A model generated the notes under the pieces. It did no database searches and was not told the origin of the DNA. It saw nothing but the letters and a program-made list of their open reading frames with translations. A DNA stretch of 64,000 nt from Zygnema circumcarinatum SAG 698-1b (lineage: Eukaryota; Plantae; Zygnematophyceae), in assembly GCA_037447605.1 (NCBI GenBank), contig CM074811.1:248001-312000 (forward strand). Direction: 5' to 3'. Shown here piece by piece: positions 1-52,616 of this stretch (position 1 is its first letter; each line of letters starts with the position of its first letter). The position numbers and the translations under genes were made by a program.

Positions 1-390
1 GAGGGTGGAAGAGCCCTTCTTCATGGTGCAGAAGGAGTNNNNNNNNNNGCGACCTCGTACACCCTGTTAATGAAAGCAGTCTGGCCGGCGCCGGAGCCGA
101 CGGAGAGGTAATCTCCGATGGAGCCCTGGCCGAGGCCGGCAATGTTTGCAGCCAAGTCGGTGGCCTTCTGCACAATCTGCAGAGAGAACACGAATTGACA
201 GAAACGCTCAGTATAACGCGGAGACCACGTCAACCGGAACCCAGCGATGTGGTGGAAATAATCCCCACCGCGGCGGTACTTCCAGACCACTCACCGGCTG
301 GACGGAGCTGGCTCCTCGGATCTGGATGGTGCTCGCCTGGGCGGCGGCGGCGGAGAGGAGGATGACGGTGGTGAACACAAGGGCGGCCAT
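1..390 (-). CDS. Secreted PstS/DING-like phosphate-binding protein (5' part only; runs into a gap and off the window edge)
   Basis: Exon 1 is 390-295, followed by a GTGAGT...TGCAG intron (294-177) and exon 2 from 176. Spliced product: MAALVFTTVILLSAAAAQA|STIQIRGASSVQPIVQKATDLAANIAGLGQGSIGDYLSVGSGAGQTAFINRVYEV. It has a signal peptide and motifs resembling the PstS/DING N-terminal GA(S/T)xxxP and YxxxGSGxG motifs. TATA-like CTATAAAA at 480-487 on the minus strand. Confidence 0.6.
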
Positions 391-551: not shown

Positions 552-866
552 TGTTGAGAATCCGACATTCTCAGTTTTGTCGTACTATTTTGTCGTTTTC
601 CCAGCCACGTGTACTTACACCTGGCTGTCCTTTTAGCTTGTACTTTCTCTGTTAGTTTAGTTGTGCTTTTGCGGCTCTGTGCTTACACCTAGCCGCCCTT
701 ACTCAGGCTAGTTCCACACTCTTTTGTCGTGTAGCTCTAGCCGCAATGTATATAAAACAGATTAGGACATTGTACTTTTTACCACGTTAATCACACATCT
801 GTTTTTGTGTCAACTCTCTCTGTCCTCACTTTTGATCGTACAATGTCCACTCCGTCTTTTTCAATA
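552..866 (+). repeat. 5' LTR (TG...TA)
   Basis: Appears identical by eye to 5010-5324. Contains TATATAAA near 748 and a G-box GCCACGTG near 604. Confidence 0.95.
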
Positions 867-3800
867 GGTTATGGGCCCACTCATGCCTCAAATGCGCTTG
901 AAAAATTTGATGGGACAAACTGGCACGACTGGAAGTTTCAGTGCTTGCAGCTTTTTGAGGAAGAGAATCTGTGGTCTGTCGTTATTGGTCTAGAGACCTG
1001 TCCTTTGCCACTTCCCTCCACCGCCGACGCGGCCGCCTTGGCTGCACGCGCGAAGGAGATCGCCGATTGGACAAAACGCGACAAGAAGGCGTTTCTCCGC
1101 ATCACACTCGGCATTCAGCGCAGTCTCATCGGACACGTCCGTGACGCCACCAGCTCCCACGACGCTTGGACTCTTCTGACCAATGCGTACGAACCTCGGA
1201 AGTGGTCTCACAAACTCCGTTTGCGGCGTGCCTTCACTAACTGCGTAAAGGAATCCTCTGAAACCATGCTGACATATACTGACCGCGTCAAATCCTTTGC
1301 TAGACGGCTTCGCAGCATTGATTGCGTAGTTCATGATGATGAGATCATCTGTAATCTTTTAGGCGGGCTGCCCGACTCTTTCCGGTCCTTCATCTCGTCC
1401 ATTGATGCTGCCTCGATCTCACTAACCGTCGCTGATCTGACCGACCTTCTTTTGAACGAGGAGGAAAAAGATTCCACCCCCTCCAGATCCTCCCACGCGT
1501 CCGCGCTTTTCGGATCTGGTCCTCCACCGCCCAAGTCTCCTGGCGCCCTCTTTTGTCGGTATTGCAANNNNNNNNNNCCTTTCTGGCCGCGGACCCTTTT
1601 GGGTATGACCCTTCTCTCCCTGACTCCACTTGGCTTATTGACTCGGGTGCCTCCCATCATCTAACTTTTCGTCGTGACTGGTTCTCTCGGCTCTCTCCCC
1701 TCCCTCTCCCCATGACCATTTTCTTAGGGGATAACCGCTCCTTGACTGCCACGCATGTCGGCCAGGTTTCCACTCTAATTGACGGCCAGCGCTTCATCAT
1801 CGATGACGTCTACCTGGTGGATGGCCTCGCGAAGAATCTGTTTTCAGTAGCCTCCATCCTGATTTTAGGCATTTCAGCTCTTTTTAGGCCAGACGGGGTT
1901 ACTTTCTTCACCCCAGACGCTGTAGTTGGGCACGGCCGCAAAACCGGCCGCTTGTTTTCCCTTACATCTTTTGCAGCCTCCCTTGGGCACGCCCATGCTC
2001 ACACCACTGACCCCCCCCTTACCTTTGCTCGGTGGCACCTCCGCTTTGGCCACCTTGCTGAAAGTAGCCTCCTCAGAACTCTCGGACAGGGCTTAGTGTT
2101 AGGTTTAGACTCTTTCTACCGACAAGTTAGATTTTTGTTCAGGCTGTATTCAAGGAAAAATGACCAGATTGCCTTTTCCCTCAAGCTCCACCCTTGTCTC
2201 TGAGCCTCTGGCACTCATTCATTCTGATGTCTGTGGCCCTATGCGTGATGTTAGCCTCGGCGGCGCATCATACTTTGTCACTTTCATTGACCAAGCGACT
2301 CATTTTTCCCATGTTTTTCCCATCGCTCACAAGTCTGACGTTTTCTCCCGCTTCCAAGAGTTCAAAGCCCGTGCAGAGACCCTTCTCGGTCGCCGCATCA
2401 AGACCCTTCGCACTGATAACGGCGGCGAGTTTATGTCCACCGCCTTCTCCAAATACCTTCGCCTTCACGGCATCACCCATCAGACTACCGCTCCCTACAC
2501 CCCCCAGCAAAATGGAGTCGCCGAGCGGTTTAACCGCACCATTCTCGACATGGCTCGCTCTATGCTTCATTTTGCCGACCTCCCTATGGCCTTCTGGGCG
2601 GAAGCCATCTCCACGGCCACTTACCTTCGAACCTTCCCACCTCTGCCCCTTCCTCACAAAGACTCCCTACTTAGGCCCGCAGGCTGCAAGCCCTCCCGCC
2701 TCCCACCTCCTCAGATCTTTACGCGTAGGCCCCGTACAAAGACTTCGTCCAGTCGTTCGGCAAATGGGGACCGCGAATGCACGCTGCATTTTTCTTGGCT
2801 ACGCTTACGCCCAAGGCCTATCAGATTCGGTGTTGTAGCGACAAATCAATTGTACTTTCGCTACGACGCCGCGATTTAATGAGGCTCTCGCGCGTTTATT
2901 CAAGCACCGCACCACGAGCACCCGCCGACTTCCTCCCCGTCGAATTCCAATCTTGCGCCGTACGATTCCCCCACCTACGTGACCGTGGGATATCATTCAC
3001 CTCCCCCCCCCGCGGCCGCTCCCCCATTGGCCGCCGACATTCCTTTTGTCCCCCCCCCGGTCGCCGCTCCCCCTTCCCCTCCCTTCGGTGCCCCCGCGTC
3101 CCCCTCCGTCGACCCTCCTCCCCCCGCCCCCCCCCCCTCCCCCTCGTCCTCTCTGCTCGACCCTACCCCTTCTGTTCAGAGGGAGATTTCAACCTCACCC
3201 GAGCCGGACGCGACCCCTCCCCTCCACCTACGCACCTCCCCCTCCCCTTTTCCCCCTCAGGCCTCCCCGCCTACCTGACCCTCCCCTTCACCGCGCCTCC
3301 CTGCCACCCTCAGCCTCCTGCACCCCTCCCTCCGCTCCCCCGCCCTGCTCCCTCACACGCACTCGAGATCGGCGACCCACGTGGAAAATTATCGACACTG
3401 CCGCCCATGCCCTCCTCTCCTCCGCCATGGCCTTCATCGCCTCCTCGTCTGCCCCCCCTACTTTTGCTGCCGCCCTTCGCACCCCTGACGCAGCCCTCTG
3501 GAAAGCTGCCGCTGATGCTGAATTCCTCTCCCTTCAGAAAAACAACACCTGGGACCTTGTCCCCCTCCCACCCGGTCGTCGCGCCATCGGCTCTAAATGG
3601 GTATTTAAAATCAAACAAAAATCCGACGGCTCGGTTGACCGCTATAAAGCCCGTTTTGTAGCCAAGGGGTTCTCTCAGCTTGAAGGCATCGACTTCACCG
3701 AAACTTATGCCCCGGTGGCCAAATTCACCTCCATTCGCGTCCTCCTTGCTCTCTCCGCCACCCACGATTGGGAAATTCACCAGATGGATGTCAAAACCGC

Positions 3801-5002
3801 ATTCCTCTACGGGGACCTTCAAGAAACGATCTTTATGCGCCAACCCGACGGGTATGTCACTCCCGGCACCGAACACCTCTTCTGCCGCCTCAACAAATCC
3901 ATCTACGGCCTCCGGCAAGCACCACGCGTCTGGAACCGCACTTTGGATGCTGTCCTTCTTGCCAGCGGCTTCACTCGCATCGACGCCGATTTCAGCATCT
4001 ATCTTCGTGGCCACGGTCAGACCCTCACCATCCTTGCCGTTTACGTTGATGACCTCATTATCTGTGGTCCCTCCCTTTCCCCCATTTCGGATGTCAAAAC
4101 AGCTCCTTCGCAGCCATTTTGACATGACGGACCTCGGCGAACTGCAATGGTGTCTCGGGATTCACGTCATTCGAGATCGGGCTGCTCGGACCCTTCACCT
4201 CAGTCAGGAAAAGTATGTTTCCGATCTCCTTGACCGTTTTGGGATGGCCGCTTGCAACCCCATCTCCACCCCCCTGGACGCCCACATTCACCTTACCTCC
4301 CTTGTGGCTGGCTCCCCCGACCCCACGGAGCATGCCACTTACCGATCCATCGTGGGATCCCTTATGTATGCAATGTTGTGTACCCGGCCCGACCTAGCTG
4401 CCGCCGTCGGGCAGCTCAGCCAATACCTTCACCGCCCCTCTTCTGCTCACTTCAGCGCTGCCAAGCGTGTCCTTCGTTACCTTCAGGGCACCAAGGCCCT
4501 GAGCCTTACCTTCTCCTCTGGCTCCCCCACCCTCGTTGGCTATTGTGACTCTGACTGGGGCAGTGACCCCGACACAAGGCGTTCGGTTACTGGCTCGTGT
4601 TTTTCTCTGGGCAGTGGCCTTATTTCATGGTCCTCTCGGAAGCAGCCTACAGTGGCCACATCCTCCACTGAAGCAGAGTATATGGCCGCCTCCACTGCTG
4701 CCAAAGAGGCTGTTTGGCTCCGATCCCTCCTCTCCAACCTCACCTTCCCTCCCCCTCACGCTACCACCGTCTTCACGGACTCTCAAGGTGCCCTTGCCCT
4801 CATGCAAAACCCCGTGCACCATCAACGTACCAAACACATCGACATTCAGTTCCACTTCACTCGGGACAAGATTGAAGACGGCACCCTTACCTTCCTCTAC
4901 TGTCCTACCGGCAAGCAGACCGCCGATTTTCTTACCAAGGCCTTACATCGGCCAGCTTTTGAGCTTCACCGCTCTTCTGCCGGACTCCACACTTTCGAAT
5001 GA
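843..5002 (+). CDS. Copia gag-pol polyprotein (split across frames, with a 10-N gap)
   Basis: Gag FDGTNW with a CRYC knuckle start; protease WLIDSGASHH; GAG-pre-integrase WHLRFGH; integrase HSDVCGP, TDNGGEF, QQNGVAER; RT KARFVAKG, QMDVKTAFL, YVDD; RNase H CDSDW, TEAEY, RTKHID. Frame changes near 2110-2160, 2640-2880 and ~4105. Confidence 0.9.
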
Positions 5003-5009
5003 GAGGGAG

Positions 5010-5324
5010 TGTTGAGAATCCGACATTCTCAGTTTTGTCGTACTATTTTGTCGTTTTCCCAGCCACGTGTACTTACACCTGGCTGTCCTTTTAGCTTGTA
5101 CTTTCTCTGTTAGTTTAGTTGTGCTTTTGCGGCTCTGTGCTTACACCTAGCCGCCCTTACTCAGGCTAGTTCCACACTCTTTTGTCGTGTAGCTCTAGCC
5201 GCAATGTATATAAAACAGATTAGGACATTGTACTTTTTACCACGTTAATCACACATCTGTTTTTGTGTCAACTCTCTCTGTCCTCACTTTTGATCGTACA
5301 ATGTCCACTCCGTCTTTTTCAATA
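5010..5324 (+). repeat. 3' LTR (TG...TA)
   Basis: Direct repeat of 552-866, preceded by the PPT and followed by the TSD. Confidence 0.95.
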
Positions 5325-7929
5325 CCCGCCGCCGCCGGTCCCCGCCCGGCCGGCCGCGTGCGGCGGCGCGGCCGGCCCGGGTCGGCGCCGCGGCATCTTT
5401 GGCCGAGGCTGCCCGGGAGAGTTTCGCAACCGGATTCTGCGAAGTTTCGAAACGTTGGCCGTCGGTGGCACGATTTAATAGGATCGGAAGGTCACCAGGA
5501 TCGATCCAAAACGATTTCGTCCTGCCCGGAACATTTCAATCTGAATCCGTCGTGTTTGTTTGGATGTACGATCAAAACGGATCGTTCGTACGCGCAACAA
5601 GCCATCGTGAATTTGCGATACGCCGCCGCCGCTAAGGACAAGAGACGCCGCCACAGGCGACAAGGGACGGCGGCGGCGGCGTTTGCCCGCCCCCGGACGC
5701 GTTCGGGAGAGCGCGGCGGCCCGAGATGGCGACGGGGCCGGTAAGAGCCGCGGCCAGACCTGCCGCGGGGAAATGGCATCGAGAGGATTATTCCTTCGCT
5801 GTTTGAAGCATCGAAAGAGCTCGTTCTCGCTCCTTTGAGCGTGGTGTGCCCACCGCACTCATCGGAGCTTTGTTCAGATATGGCTCGGATCGAGGGGCCG
5901 GGGTGGGGACCGGCTTTGGAAGGTGCTCGACATGTTGGCGGTGTCGTCAAGTTACATTCATAAGTAATAAGCGTCTGCACAACTGTGGCATCGTGCTGGT
6001 TACTATGTGAAGCATGGACTGCGATTGGTTCCATGACGATAATATTGGTCGGTTGCTTTCATTGTCGATTTTGTCTGTTGGGACGTGAGCGAAGGTGACC
6101 ATAATGTTGTTTTTCCGATTGGTGAAGTGCGAGCCTGACACAGGCAGGCGCTTCAGCGGAAGGCACGGTTCTGAAATTCTCTGCAAGGCCATTGCGCCCT
6201 GCATGAGCATGTGCTGTTTTGTACATGCGATGAACTCCGTTGCAGAGTAGCAGAGCACAGCAAATTGGGGGCAAGGAGTGGCGTTGATCTTACTGACGAC
6301 GGCGAATTGGCGATGTCATCAATAAGCGACGAGCTGAAATCTGCTTCTACGGCAAGCTCACTTCTAGCGCCGGAAATTTGCGGCGAACCGCGACCTCGAC
6401 CGGCGGTCACCGCGGTCGACGGCTGCTCGGCAGCAGCGCTGATTGTACCGCCACGTGGCAGCGGGCGATTGGATAAAGGCCATCCAATACTGTCGAAATG
6501 TCGCGACACGTTGCATAAGCCGCTGACATGGTAGTCAAGTGACAGCCGCGTGGGCACCACGTCGGCAGAATTGGCCCTCATGGAAGCCGGAAACGCGTCG
6601 CACACAACGCCAAAACGCTGCATGGAGCCCCGCCCTCGCCATCGCATGTAAATAAAACAGGAGCAGATCCACAGGAAGTTTTCGCAAGTTTTTATGATCT
6701 TAACATGGCGCATGCGAAATCTGACCTTGCAAGGCTTCTAAGGTACGACTTTTGGGTTTAGAGGGCTAGGCTGCTAAAGCCCTGTTGCAACTACCTTGGA
6801 AAACCCATCAGCGTCCGTCCACGAGGATCTGAAGCAGTGTTGCCCAGAGCTATCTTCGGAGCCCAAATGTCAGATAAAACCCAGGGCCCTTCGATTTCGC
6901 CATTTTTTCTCAAGGGCGGACCCGGACGCGACCATTGAAGAGCCGGCCAGTCTTGGTCGGACGGTCGATATCGTTGAGCTGGTCAGATGGGTTTGACCAA
7001 CCGACTAACGCAATTGCTGACATGACACATGCTGGAATGACAGCGGCCGTAGTCGACTGCTTCTCCCTGATGCAATCCATATGCTGCCATAGGATATGGA
7101 CATATTTTTTGTTTGAAGTCATTTTTAGTTGCATATAATTTGTTGGATATGATCTAAAGGCATGGAGCACAGACAATTCTCCAGCGCGTCCATTGCTGCG
7201 GTAGAGCACTATCCTGCGTCAGTGTGCGACCATCTTTCAACATATGGACAAACACTAGGGGTGGAAGTCCATATGGATGGCGACCTTCAGCGCATTTTAC
7301 CACCACAGAACTCCACTTAGGACCAAAAACTTCCGTGTCAGCCACTGATCCCCAGACGCCCCTTAAGAATACCCTAAACCATACTCACCAACTCAGCTGT
7401 CCCTGCAGAGCATTTAAGAACTGCACCTGTAGGGAGAGGGAGAGGGAGAGGAAGAGGGAGAGGGAGAGGGAGAAGGTGGAGAGGGAGAGGGAGAGGGAGG
7501 GGGAGGGGGCGGGCGCAGGAGTGGGCGAGGGTGCGGGCACCACCCATTTAGATGATGTCAAGAGTTTGAAAAACGAAGATAATATGCAACCCCCCTCGTT
7601 TACGCCTCACGCATTCCATCAAGTCGAGCTCATTCTGTGTACCGTACCACGTCTCTATTCTCCATATTCTCTCCTGTCCTGCGTCTACTAAGAGGCAGTC
7701 TATCTATAGGTTCACTGTCAAGCATTTGCAATGCAGAACTAGAGGCAGGAATGCACATAGCGGGCGCGAGCAGTGGCAGGCAAACTGCCCACTAGGATCA
7801 GAAATCCACGAAATCTTTGTTGACGTTTCCATTCATTCCTACCGAGACACGCACTGTGGCACAAGTCTCGTCACGCGCTCTACACTTCCATGTCTGTGTG
7901 TCTTTTGCTCGTTATACCTATATAAGTAG

Positions 7930-14400: not shown

Positions 14401-15936
14401 ATGGCTGTGGAGCTCGCCTCCTTCAGCTTGGAGCCTGCAGGAAGTGGGGGGGGGAGCCAGCTGTCGCCCTCCATTCTCCTTCCCTTTGCCACTTGGCGCA
14501 CGCAGAGCGGCTCTGGTCGCCTTCCATTTGCGAGCCAGCAGGTTTTAGCAGTGGGAGGCGTCATAGCCGTTGTTCTGACGGCCATGGCTGTCATTTCTGT
14601 ACTTGTGTTTAGCGCCCACAACACTCATAAGGAGGGGCATGATGCGAAGGCGGACATCGTGGGAGCTGCTGTGGAGACTGAAGCCTTGATGCTGCCAGGT
14701 GTGCAGCTATCGACATTGCTAACTTCTTGTAGCTACTCTTTGCACTTGTTTTTGTTGAAAGAAGTTCCATTTGTTTTCCTTTTTTGGCCTTTTGATTCAT
14801 TCACGGATATCCTGGATAGTTCGCGTTTTAGGGTCAGTCTGTGTCTCAACCGGAAATGGCCACTAGCTGTGGAAGTAGTGAGAGAGAGAAGAGAGAGGAA
14901 TGAAGGACGGGTATGTTACGTGGTACACGGTATTTTACATTTTACATTTTTTCAGATATTGACTGATCGTACCAAGTTAGGTCCTAATATACAATCTGGG
15001 GGCAGGAGTTATTGTGAATATCCTATCTCAGTAACAAGTTAATAAAAGAATATAGACTGAAAGACTGAGCATAATGCAGATACAGAGAAACCAATGGTGC
15101 ATACAGACTTGTTGACCTTCCATTCATGTCGTNNNNNNNNNNNNNNNNNNNNNNNNNNNNNNNNNNNNNNNNNNNNNNNNNNNNNNNNNNNNNNNNNNNN
15201 NNNNNNNNNNNNNNNNNNNNNNNNNNNNNNNNTNNNNNNNNNNNNNNNNNNNNNNNNNNNNNTAATCAAAACAAGTTAGGGTAGATTCAGTTTAATGGTC
15301 GACAAGTATGTTGTAATGTCTACAAATACTGAAATTCTGCAGTCCCGAGAGCGAGATTTGGAGAAGGGTAAATGCTAGGAGAGTGACACACACCAGGTAC
15401 CATATAGTTGCTACGTGATAGGGATCGCTAAATGAATCACTGTAGTACAATCGAACCACTGAAGTTTAGTGGATCATGTTTTGCAGGAAGAAGGCCCTTG
15501 AGAAGCATGAGGCCCTGTTGAAAAGCGATAACGGGAAATGGATAAATGAAATCAGTGAAGAGCTAAATCTGGCCTATGGTGAGCACACTACTTGCAGAGC
15601 GTCTTTATGCTGCAGTTTCAGTTCAACTGTTTCAGGGCCAGTTGTGTCAGTTCAACTGTTCAAGCGCGTGCTGTCTTGGAAAGGGAAGAGCAACGCCCTG
15701 TCAAAGGGCTGTGAGATTAGAAGCTCAACTTTCTGAATACGTCACTGACAGTAAATGGTTTTGTATTGATGGTTCGCCTGTCTGAAACCCTCACATTCTG
15801 TGTTGCAGCCATGCACGAGCTCACGAGCCTGAAGGCGCCGGAGACATTCGATTGGTTCAAGAACCGATGTTGGTCCCGCGGGCAGTACAGGCACCGCCGC
15901 TGCCGCATGTACACGGACCGGGTCACAGTGCGATAG
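14401..15936 (+). CDS. Hypothetical single-pass (type II) membrane protein; the model spans an assembly gap
   Basis: Hydrophobic segment VLAVGGVIAVVLTAMAVISVLVF. Phase-compatible downstream exons KKALEKHEALLKSDNGKWINEISEELNLAY / AMHELTSLKAPETFDWFKNRCWSRGQYRHRRCRMYTDRVTVR* with GT-AG sites. No family recognised. Confidence 0.45.
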
Positions 15937-15982
15937 ATAAAGGAAGATGTGGCATTGATCTCACGATGGCCATGCCATCAAA

Positions 15983-16004
15983 TGGACATGGACATGGACA
16001 TGGA

Positions 16005-16044
<40 letters not shown>

Positions 16045-16118
16045 GACATGGACATGGGCATGGGCATGGGCATGGGCATTGGCATGGACATGGACATGGA
16101 CATGGACATGGACATGGA
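15983..16118. repeat. (GGACAT/GGGCAT)n hexamer microsatellite
   Basis: Direct tandem array of about 22 units. Confidence 0.95.
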
Positions 16119-38721: not shown

Positions 38722-40404
38722 ATGGCTTCCGACAAGATTCAGCTCTACTCTGTCTTCACCCCGAATGGGATGAAGGTGAGGCTTCACTACTCCTCACAGG
38801 CCTTTGCAGCTTATTTGCTGGTCCAAACTCCTTTTTGTACATATGGACGGCAATTTAGCTTTACTTTCTTCTTTATAATGTGATCACTCGAAGCTGAACA
38901 CACAGGCACTGGTGGAGTAAAGCTTGATGATGTTCCCCTGCTTGCCTCTCTAAACGTGTGTGCTTCAGGAACGTTGTGCTTTTGGCTTGCTTTTCACTTT
39001 TCGGAAGTCGAGTGTAAGTTTAGACATTTTTCATTTCCTTGGACAGGTTGCTATTGCATTGGAGGAGATGGAACTAGAGTACGAGCCACACACTGTCAAC
39101 ATCTTCAAAGGGGAGCAGCACACTCCGGAGTTCCTTGCCGTTAATCCCAACGGCAAAATTCCAGCGATTGTGGATCCGAATGGCCCTGGTGATGCCTTCA
39201 TCCCAACATGAACTCATGCTAAAGGCGAAACTCTATTTGTTTCCACATGCTTATGCGTCTCCATGTTTTGCTAGTAACCCTTCTCTTTTTTAAGCTGAAC
39301 CTTTTGTTTTGTCGTTTGACTCGATTGTGTGCAGGAGGCAAGCCGATCAACATGTTCGAAAGTGGCGCCATATTGATGTACCTTGCGGAGAAGTCAGGCA
39401 AGTTTTTGCCGAAGGATCCCGTCCACAAGTGGGAGACAATTCAGTGGCTGTTCTTTCAAATGGCCGGAATTGGGCCCATGTTTGGCCAGGTAAGGAAGCC
39501 TTCTTCTTCAAGTTTCTCTTAACTGCTTTCGGGATAAAAATCTGCCGACTTTCTATTGTGTTCTCTTGATTTGAGGAACGCTAATGTTCTACGACGTTTG
39601 GGATGTCTTGGGTCTGCAGTTCGGCCACTTCTTCAAATTTGCCAAAGATAAGGTATACATTTATTTTGCATTTTCCGCGGTTGACTTGTCTTTTCGGCCC
39701 ACAGCTTTGGCTACTATGTGGCGCCATTGAGGAGCATAAGTGATAATGTACATCTTGGACTTCCAAGGAGAACGACATCATTATCGTATCAGTATCAGTA
39801 TCAGTATCAGTATCAGTATCAGTATCAGTATCAGTATCAGTATCAGTATCAGTATCAGTATCAGTATAGTAGTAGTATAGTAGTAGTATCAGTATCGACA
39901 TCAGTATCTGAAGTTTGACTTTGCTTTCGTTCTAATTTGTTCGTACTTTCTTGTGCAGTGTGATCATCCATACCCTGAGGAGCGGTACACTACTGAAGCC
40001 AAGCGCTTATTGGGAGTTCTTGAAAAGAGATTGGAGGGGCGAGACTTCTTGATCGACAGCGGATACACTATTGCGGACATGGCGACTTTTCCATGGGTGA
40101 TATGCCTTACGGTCAGAAATCAGCCCCCCACCTCATGAAGGAGCAATTGGGGGTTCATTTTTATAGTGGTGATATGTTGGTCTTGGTAGGGAGAGGAGAA
40201 TGACTGCGCATGGGGTCATACGGAGGTGATTTTAATTTCTATTGTACGTCTAACTCTTTTGACTCGCTTTGTGGACAGAAATACTACCAAGCCGATGAGC
40301 ACCTTCAACTTGAAACGTTTCCAAATGTTATGCAGTGGGTGGAGCGATGCAAGGCACGCCCACTCAGCGCGAAGGGACTTGAAGTTTGCGCATTAAGCTT
40401 TTAG
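38722..40404 (+). CDS. Glutathione S-transferase, Ure2p/Nu (YfcG-like) class, copy 1, 6 exons
   Basis: [71 protein letters not shown]. Confidence 0.92.
39787..39866. repeat. (TATCAG)n microsatellite in a GST copy 1 intron
   Basis: About 13 tandem hexamers. Confidence 0.95.
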
Positions 40405-41561: not shown

Positions 41562-41820
41562 GCGATTTTGCAGCTTCTGCTTCACTTGCCGAGCAGCTTC
41601 CGGCGAAAGAGCGCAACAATGAATGGCCTGCAAAACGTCACCAGTTCCGTTTTGTGACTTCAGAAACGTTGCGGATTTGCAGCTTCTCCTTCACTTGCTG
41701 AGCAGCTTCCGGCGAAAGACCGCAACAATGAAATGGCCTGCAAAACGTCACCAGTTCCGTTTTGTGACTTCAGAAACTTTGTGGAGTTGCAGCTTCTCCT
41801 TCACTTGCTGAGCAGCTTCT
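41562..41820. repeat. ~110-bp tandem repeat, about 2.4 copies
   Basis: TTGCAGCTTCT(G/C)CTTCACTTGC(C/T)GAGCAGCTTC recurs at ~41568, ~41677 and ~41787. Confidence 0.85.
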
Positions 41821-42714
41821 AACGAAGGAGCGCAAGAATGGCCAGCCGCGTCGGTGCCGTACTTTCCAAACCGGCGTGCAAGTAAAAAGGACAATGGATG
41901 ACGCAGTTCGATACATAAGAATTGGTACAGTTCTGAACGAGATTATCGGCTTTGATCCTACTATTGTACAGTACAAAAATATAAGATATCGGATACGGTA
42001 CGGTAAGAAAGCGTGATGATCTGCAGATTCTGCAATTGAAGATTTCATGTCAGTGGGTGATGCTGCACGCCGAGTAGGGAGCGTACGGTAGCTACTGAGC
42101 CGCTCCTACTGAAAATGTATAAAGCAGAATACGGTAGAGGTAGAGCAGGAGTCAACATTGGTTTTCGGGCTCGACTGCTGCAAGGGAGGCTGCATCCTTG
42201 AAGTTAACGTATGTCTTTCAAGCTCTTCAGTTTTTTTTTTATTGGAGAGGTCTCTGACATTTTGTATACGTGGTTTAAGCATAATAGAGTTTAAAGTTTT
42301 ATTGTTCGTGTGGTCATACATTATTGTAGAAAGCTTGCATGCAGCTTGAAAAGAAACGTGCCTCGGGTATCGCGATCATATCACCTGCTGTTTGCTGAAC
42401 ATCGTCTTTGCCGACTTTACGAGTTTGATTGATTTCTGTCATTCATATCTCGTTTTTAGTCTTTAAGTCGTATTTAGTTTTCCTTCCTTCTGTCTTTTTC
42501 CTTTGAGATGAGAAGCTGCCAAGTTTGAACACGCTTCGCCTCATTTTTAGATTGAAGATTCTTATTATTCTTTTCCCATTTTTAATATTTTTTTGTAGGC
42601 GGATTGAATGAATTTGCATCCAGCAGAGCACTGATAAGGGAACTTAATCTCGTGCAGGATTCCGGCTTTCCTTGTATAAGCTGCTCTGTTCAGTTCTAGA
42701 GAACAGAAGCATCC

Positions 42715-45234: not shown

Positions 45235-48329
<3,095 letters not shown>

Positions 48330-49514: not shown

Positions 49515-52616
<3,102 letters not shown>

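Follow-up and report, generated by a model that had tools for sequence, protein, structure and literature searches.

Splicing and expression of an intron-containing nuclear gene for a probable secreted PstS-type protein next to a young copia element

To our knowledge, phosphate uptake in land plants and most model algae relies on membrane carriers only. Among the secreted or periplasmic phosphate binders, DING proteins and the PstS protein of E. coli have a first loop of the GAT.P form, which is shorter than the GSSTV.P type described below. DING proteins are defined by the signature N-terminus DINGGG (PMC7922408), and eukaryotic DING genes have been described as a missing item (PMC2817009). 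In diatoms, a nuclear gene product named 'Phosphate-binding protein PstS', which is listed as prokaryotic in origin and as bearing a signal peptide, has been reported (PMC3237598). A literature search on PstS in streptophyte algae found no paper.

The window (the whole 64,000-nucleotide stretch of DNA that was analysed) carries at its left edge the 5' part of a minus-strand gene (positions 1-390, first two exons), whose body extends beyond that edge. Read from the sequence, exon 1 (390-295, 96 nt) has 32 codons and encodes MAALVFTTVILLSAAAAQASTIQIRGASSVQP, starting at an ATG (390-388) in the good context GCCATGG. Its first 19 residues, MAALVFTTVILLSAAAAQA (334-390), end in AQA and form a putative signal peptide, with a mean Kyte-Doolittle hydropathy of 1.9 against -0.1 for residues 20-32. 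The N-terminus thus resembles a cleavable signal peptide, and cleavage is likely after AQA, because small residues occupy positions -3 and -1. The remaining, mature part of exon 1, STIQIRGASSVQP (295-333), corresponds in hhalign and profile alignments to a first beta-strand and a G-[AS]-S-[ST]-V-x-P loop, here GASSVQP (315-295). It is followed by an intron of 118 nt (177-294), which runs from GTGAGT to CTCTGCAG, contains a stop codon in the reading frame of exon 1 and has a GC content of 55%, against 70% and 62% for the two exons. Exon 2 is partial (49-176); it encodes IVQKATDLAANIAGLGQGSIGDYLSVGSGAGQTAFINRVYEV plus two bases of an Ala codon before running into an assembly gap. Its motif-bearing stretch reads YLSVGSGAGQTAF and includes a GSGAG loop at 98-84. 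No second copy of exon 1 or exon 2 was found within the window.

Four public runs (X1, X2, X9 and X17, of which X2 is DNA) were aligned to positions 49-900. In one contig each from X1 (1453 nt), X9 (1545 nt) and X17 (1176 nt), which come from three studies, position 176 was joined exactly to 295. The ends of the skipped segment are CT..AC on the plus strand, that is GT..AG for the gene, and depth across 194-280 was zero in all three runs. In the DNA run X2, several contigs covered the intron and the 176|295 joint did not occur, so the joined contigs of the other three runs are transcripts. The exact skipping of 177-294 in three runs, together with the retention of the intron in DNA, demonstrated that the splice is real and that the gene is expressed. 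The RNA contigs covered 49-176 without a break and extended 771-1131 nt past position 49, which leaves room for a protein of roughly 350-400 residues and a 3' UTR. A candidate splice donor, AG|GTGTAC at 62-57, was ruled out because the RNA contigs pass through it to position 49; VYEVA is therefore exonic. The X1 contig matched the window over 295-580, which includes the locus-specific leader and an LTR junction, with one difference, so that the present copy, or an identical one, is transcribed. The high and repeated recovery of transcripts in three unrelated studies fits an abundant product. The sequence-only reading had joined two open reading frame fragments through a canonical 118-bp GT-AG intron, noted a signal-peptide-like N-terminus, stated that only about 75 amino acids were visible and asked for RNA reads across 177-294. 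The transcripts contain exactly the joint it drew, the hydrophobic 19-residue start ending in AQA agrees with its second point, and the continuation of the gene past the left edge of the window agrees with its third.

Upstream of the start codon, the 5' UTR and the remaining proximal promoter occupy 391-551 and include TATAAAA at 486-480 (minus strand). This GC-rich promoter has received a Ty1/copia LTR retrotransposon (552-5324, plus strand, directed away from the gene), which lies 161 nt upstream of the start codon. It contains an RVT_2 domain match (E 1.9e-8) and two LTRs of 315 nt each (552-866 and 5010-5324), which are identical at 315 of 315 positions. A purine-rich tract, GAGAGGGAG, precedes the 3' LTR, and the perfect 5-bp target duplication CCCGC is intact on both sides (547-551 and 5325-5329). 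The insertion is very young and simple. Many contigs end loosely at 550-552 and 866, as expected at the edges of a repeat. The gag, integrase and reverse transcriptase of the element do not share one reading frame, and it also contains a proline-rich stretch (2777-3661) and an N-gap (1568-1577). Either the copy is young but non-autonomous, or the assembly has introduced indels into it.

Since the copia element with its target duplication sits 161 nt from the ATG, the surrounding DNA is nuclear eukaryotic DNA. Bacterial contamination is excluded by the presence of an intron, by its removal in RNA and by the neighbouring copia element with its target duplication; the earlier description of an intron-containing nuclear gene, and the argument that intron and adjacent copia speak against contamination, are borne out by the spliced contigs, the intron-retaining DNA run and the intact insertion. 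The TATA box fared less simply. TATAAAA is present upstream as proposed, but the RNA contigs run past it, since they reach 190 nt or more beyond the ATG on its 5' side. Contigs of X1 and X9 were unbroken over 295-580, and so covered about 30 nt of the 5' LTR on its antisense side. This distance is the limit of a k-mer assembly entering a repeat, and the contigs cannot mark a start site; nevertheless, some transcription must cross the LTR junction and pass the TATA box. This transcription could be LTR-associated or read-through. A long leader, if real, carries upstream ATGs at 568 and 528. The P1BS motif (GNATATNC) was absent from the remaining promoter.

The two visible motifs were compared with those of the PstS family. 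In this family a first anion-binding loop, G-S-S/T-T/S-V-x-P, follows the first strand near the mature N-terminus, and is present here as GASSVQP; the second loop, GSGxG, is present as GSGAG, 26 residues after the Pro of GASSVQP, where the family expectation is about 20-25. Each of the supporting statistics is weak alone. A profile was built from 19 plasmid-borne PstS-family genes of the GSSTV.P type (from, for example, Vibrio, Listeria, Leptolyngbya and Agrobacterium), and all six-frame stop-to-stop segments of the window (n=1954) were scored with hmmsearch --max, that is with filters off. The segment containing exon 1 ranked first of the 1954 (E 0.49), with STIQIRGASSVQP on profile positions 40-55. 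The exon-2 segment ranked only 65th; its best domain, SVGSGAGQTAFINRVYEV, fell on positions 76-93, at the next loop and at the right distance, beginning 20 profile positions beyond the exon-1 match. Single bacterial PstS sequences used as phmmer queries against the six-frame window were too weak, and only the family profile put exon 1 first. When hhalign was run against a 13-sequence PstS alignment (A1), exon 1 aligned to columns 47-62 (sgtI..GSsTv.p) with P 0.0045 and exon 2 to columns 86-96 (GSg.G.k) with P 0.055. The Fisher combination of these values is about 0.002, collinearity not yet counted.

A phmmer search with exon 2 against 177,635 distinct PDB sequences placed DING or phosphate-binding proteins at ranks 1-3, 5 and 6 (E 0.19-2.5). 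In this alignment IGDYLSVGSGAGQTAFINRVY of exon 2 pairs with FAPYIGVGSGKGKIAFLENKY of DING, with 9 of 21 residues identical, at chain residues 24-44, which is the expected place of the loop. The pattern G[SA]S[ST][VLI].P followed by [VIL]G[ST]G.G within 400 nt on the same strand had a single occurrence across all six frames of the window and none in 200 shuffles, the two-motif patterns having been picked after the sequence had been seen. A chance pairing of the two motifs is unlikely. The PstS motifs named in the sequence-only reading therefore hold up, as they fall on the first two phosphate loops of PBP_like_2 in the right order and with the right spacing. Since about 75 residues of the protein are visible and the exons, of 32 and 42 residues, were searched separately, the PstS reading is modestly supported.

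Taken together, these features suggest that the protein is probably a member of the PstS/PBP_like_2 superfamily; continued tight binding of phosphate is somewhat less probable. We regard the locus as an expressed nuclear gene for what is probably a secreted PstS-type protein, most likely a soluble extracellular phosphate binder; fold, ligand and secretion are what we infer from its motifs and N-terminus. The signal peptide would direct the protein via the ER to the cell surface or wall. At its start the mature protein would carry both of the anion-binding loops found at the N-terminus of PstS, whose family of periplasmic-type phosphate binders has a 'Venus flytrap' fold. Orthophosphate would be held between its two lobes as they close, by the serines of GASS and GSGAG together with ligands outside the visible part. 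In PstS these further ligands are an Asp/Arg after the second loop and, in domain 2, an Arg and the S-G-T loop; here their positions would fall in the gap or left of position 1. We know of no PstCAB partner in a eukaryote; lacking one, the protein may serve as a high-affinity sink that raises local phosphate for plasma-membrane carriers. A similar mode of action has been proposed for the DING and PstS exoproteins of bacteria.

The same fold might also do another job, in that tight phosphate binding has been lost, another oxyanion (sulfate, molybdate/tungstate or phosphite/phosphonate) is bound, or the protein has a wall or signalling role. The visible part includes just two of about eight phosphate-contacting positions, and the PstS consensus G..DI..ASR after the second loop is replaced by FINRVYEVA, a departure seen over the roughly 75 residues compared. 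Moreover, the window copy has an Arg beside the first loop. This Arg depends on base 318, which is G in the window and C in all four runs, DNA and RNA alike, so that codon 25 changes from Arg (CGA) to Gly (GGA) and the expressed protein reads IQIGGASS; the mismatch reflects a difference between strains or else an error in the assembly. Both visible contacts are kept, namely the serines of GASS and GSGAG, and the best solved-structure matches are all phosphate binders, which makes another job unlikely.

It is quite unlikely that the gene encodes an unrelated secreted protein in which two short glycine/serine-rich motifs resemble PstS by chance. In favour of such a protein, the curated libraries were silent: with single exons (32 and 42 residues), Pfam, NCBIfam and PHROGs gave no relevant match up to E 10, PF12849 included, and the sole row, to HPE1 (E 0.16), matched at the level of a signal peptide. 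The similarity statistics are marginal throughout (E 0.19, E 0.49, P 0.055), and the motif patterns were selected with the sequence in view. The search of 1.84 billion representative proteins with exon 2 was blank but for P0001, an 887-residue cysteine-rich repeat protein, which was rejected as spurious. Against it, two independent exons match loops that follow each other in one family, correctly ordered and spaced. The segment with exon 1 tops all 1954 segments, and DING proteins head an unbiased search of the 177,635 PDB sequences, aligned where the loop belongs in the chain.

Several other searches were negative. The PDB search with exon 1 was blank, as was tblastn with exon 2 against plasmids. 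In the ESM Atlas, exon 2 returned only unnamed short viral clusters, with recognition under the useful range. A word search with the 80-residue open reading frame at 51-290 (minus strand) listed one candidate, and none was scored; an exact look-up of the 60-residue open reading frame at 211-390 (minus strand) found no record. Rfam gave nothing over the whole window, and no host-gene domain was detected in ten of its larger open reading frames.

A link to the DING proteins and a domestication of a bacterial gene had both been proposed from the sequence. The DING stretch given there was accurate when compared with the PDB alignment, but the link itself finds no support. The mature protein starts with STIQI(R/G)GASS rather than DINGGG(ATLP), and it is therefore not a DING protein. 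In place of high identity to Pseudomonas-type DING over about 370 residues, the match covers a stretch of 21 residues, 9 of them identical (E 0.19). The gene has no bearing on the puzzle of the missing DING genes and clearly does not solve it. As for a recent domestication, no confirmed close relative of exon 2 was found in 185,579 bacterial and archaeal species (one genome each) or in JGI metagenomes, where only pattern matches occurred. The query was exon 2 extended into the open frame to about 50 residues, which detects close relatives only; therefore only a very recent transfer is excluded, and to that extent a recent domestication is not supported.

The gene is one member of a multi-copy family in the genome. 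Contigs of X17 and X2 depart from the window at 394, a few bases before the start codon, and the exons have several times the summed DNA depth of the leader at 397-541, where depth is not a copy count. The divergence and the excess of depth over the exons indicate several paralogues with near-identical coding starts and different leaders. The X1 transcript contig differs from the window at 140, 143 and 145, which changes N-I-A of exon 2 to S-V-P, and X9 shows the signal-peptide differences A15V, I10V, T8A and V5A; these amino-acid differences are those of expressed paralogues or alleles.

The assembly gap that interrupts exon 2 occupies 39-48 and has 10 N, a length that is only an estimate, as N-run lengths are. 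The 38 bases to its left (1-38, minus strand) are probably more of the same exon, in a frame that depends on the gap length. If the gap is taken as exactly 10 N, the frame of exon 2 continues for the 5 codons TPSAP before meeting a stop (TGA); the other two frames of 1-38 are open and read LLLHHEEGLFHP and SFCTMKKGSSTL. A 576-nt DNA contig (X2 record 11) reaches 440 nt left of position 49 and spans the gap, which public reads can therefore close. With transcripts that go on for about 1 kb, the gap-length estimate is more likely wrong than the protein is to end there, and the conclusions on the gene rest on sequence other than 1-38. It is very improbable that the present copy is damaged (truncated at the gap or disturbed by the copia element 161 nt upstream) with the transcripts coming from intact paralogues: the stop 5 codons past a 10-N gap, the Arg at codon 25 that occurs in no run and the existence of paralogues with near-identical exons would fit, but the X1 and X9 contigs carry the locus's own leader and LTR junction, the spliced exons 1 and 2 and more than 1 kb beyond, and the N-run length is just an estimate.

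Further assembly gaps in the window lie at 15133-15232 and 15234-15262. Two (CT)n microsatellites were seen, of 803 bp at 51535-52337 and of 182 bp at 47202-47383, the longer of which yields several spurious open reading frames of more than 340 codons. There is also a tandem repeat at 41567-41840 (110-bp unit, 2.5 copies, 92% matches), and hexamer arrays consist of 23 copies of ATGGAC at 15982-16118 and 22 copies of ATCAGT at 39777-39908.

For the secreted PstS-type protein preferred here, the locus adds direct proof of splicing and expression of the present copy. If a secreted high-affinity phosphate binder does exist in a close plant relative, it would be an unstudied step in phosphate scavenging and a possible trait. 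We also raise, tentatively and with more doubt than confidence, a wider proposal: that an amplified family of secreted PstS-type proteins, expressed at a high level, is retained in this plant lineage as a transporter-independent layer of extracellular phosphate capture, a eukaryotic counterpart of the bacterial DING and PstS exoproteins, and that the present copy was recently rewired by the copia LTR in its promoter, with transcripts crossing the LTR junction. The effect of this very young promoter insertion on expression is open to test.

Among known systems, the protein most resembles PstS of the PF12849 (PBP_like_2) and TIGR02136 type, which likewise has an N-terminal export signal, a first strand, a G-S/A-S-T/S-V-x-P loop and GSGxG about 24 residues on. 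Unlike these, the gene here is nuclear and spliced, it would specify a eukaryotic signal peptide in place of a lipoprotein or Sec signal, and no pstCAB genes lie near it. The PstS of E. coli (TIGR00975 type) would share the superfamily and the ligand of the family assigned here; BLASTP of this protein against exon 2 gave E 6.4 at a non-homologous place, with no pairwise similarity detectable. The DING proteins (PDB 2v3q, the human phosphate-binding protein, 3w9v, 2q9t and 4f18, PfluDING) are the best solved-structure matches of exon 2, and since they are secreted, bind phosphate and have no transporter dedicated to them, they may offer an analogy for the way in which the present protein acts. 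They differ from it in that the first loop here belongs to the GSSTV.P type, in which three residues precede the Pro, and has no DINGGG before it. The diatom PstS offers a parallel in setting, since the present protein would likewise be a signal-peptide-bearing PstS homologue encoded by a nuclear gene of a photosynthetic eukaryote, a likeness drawn by description.
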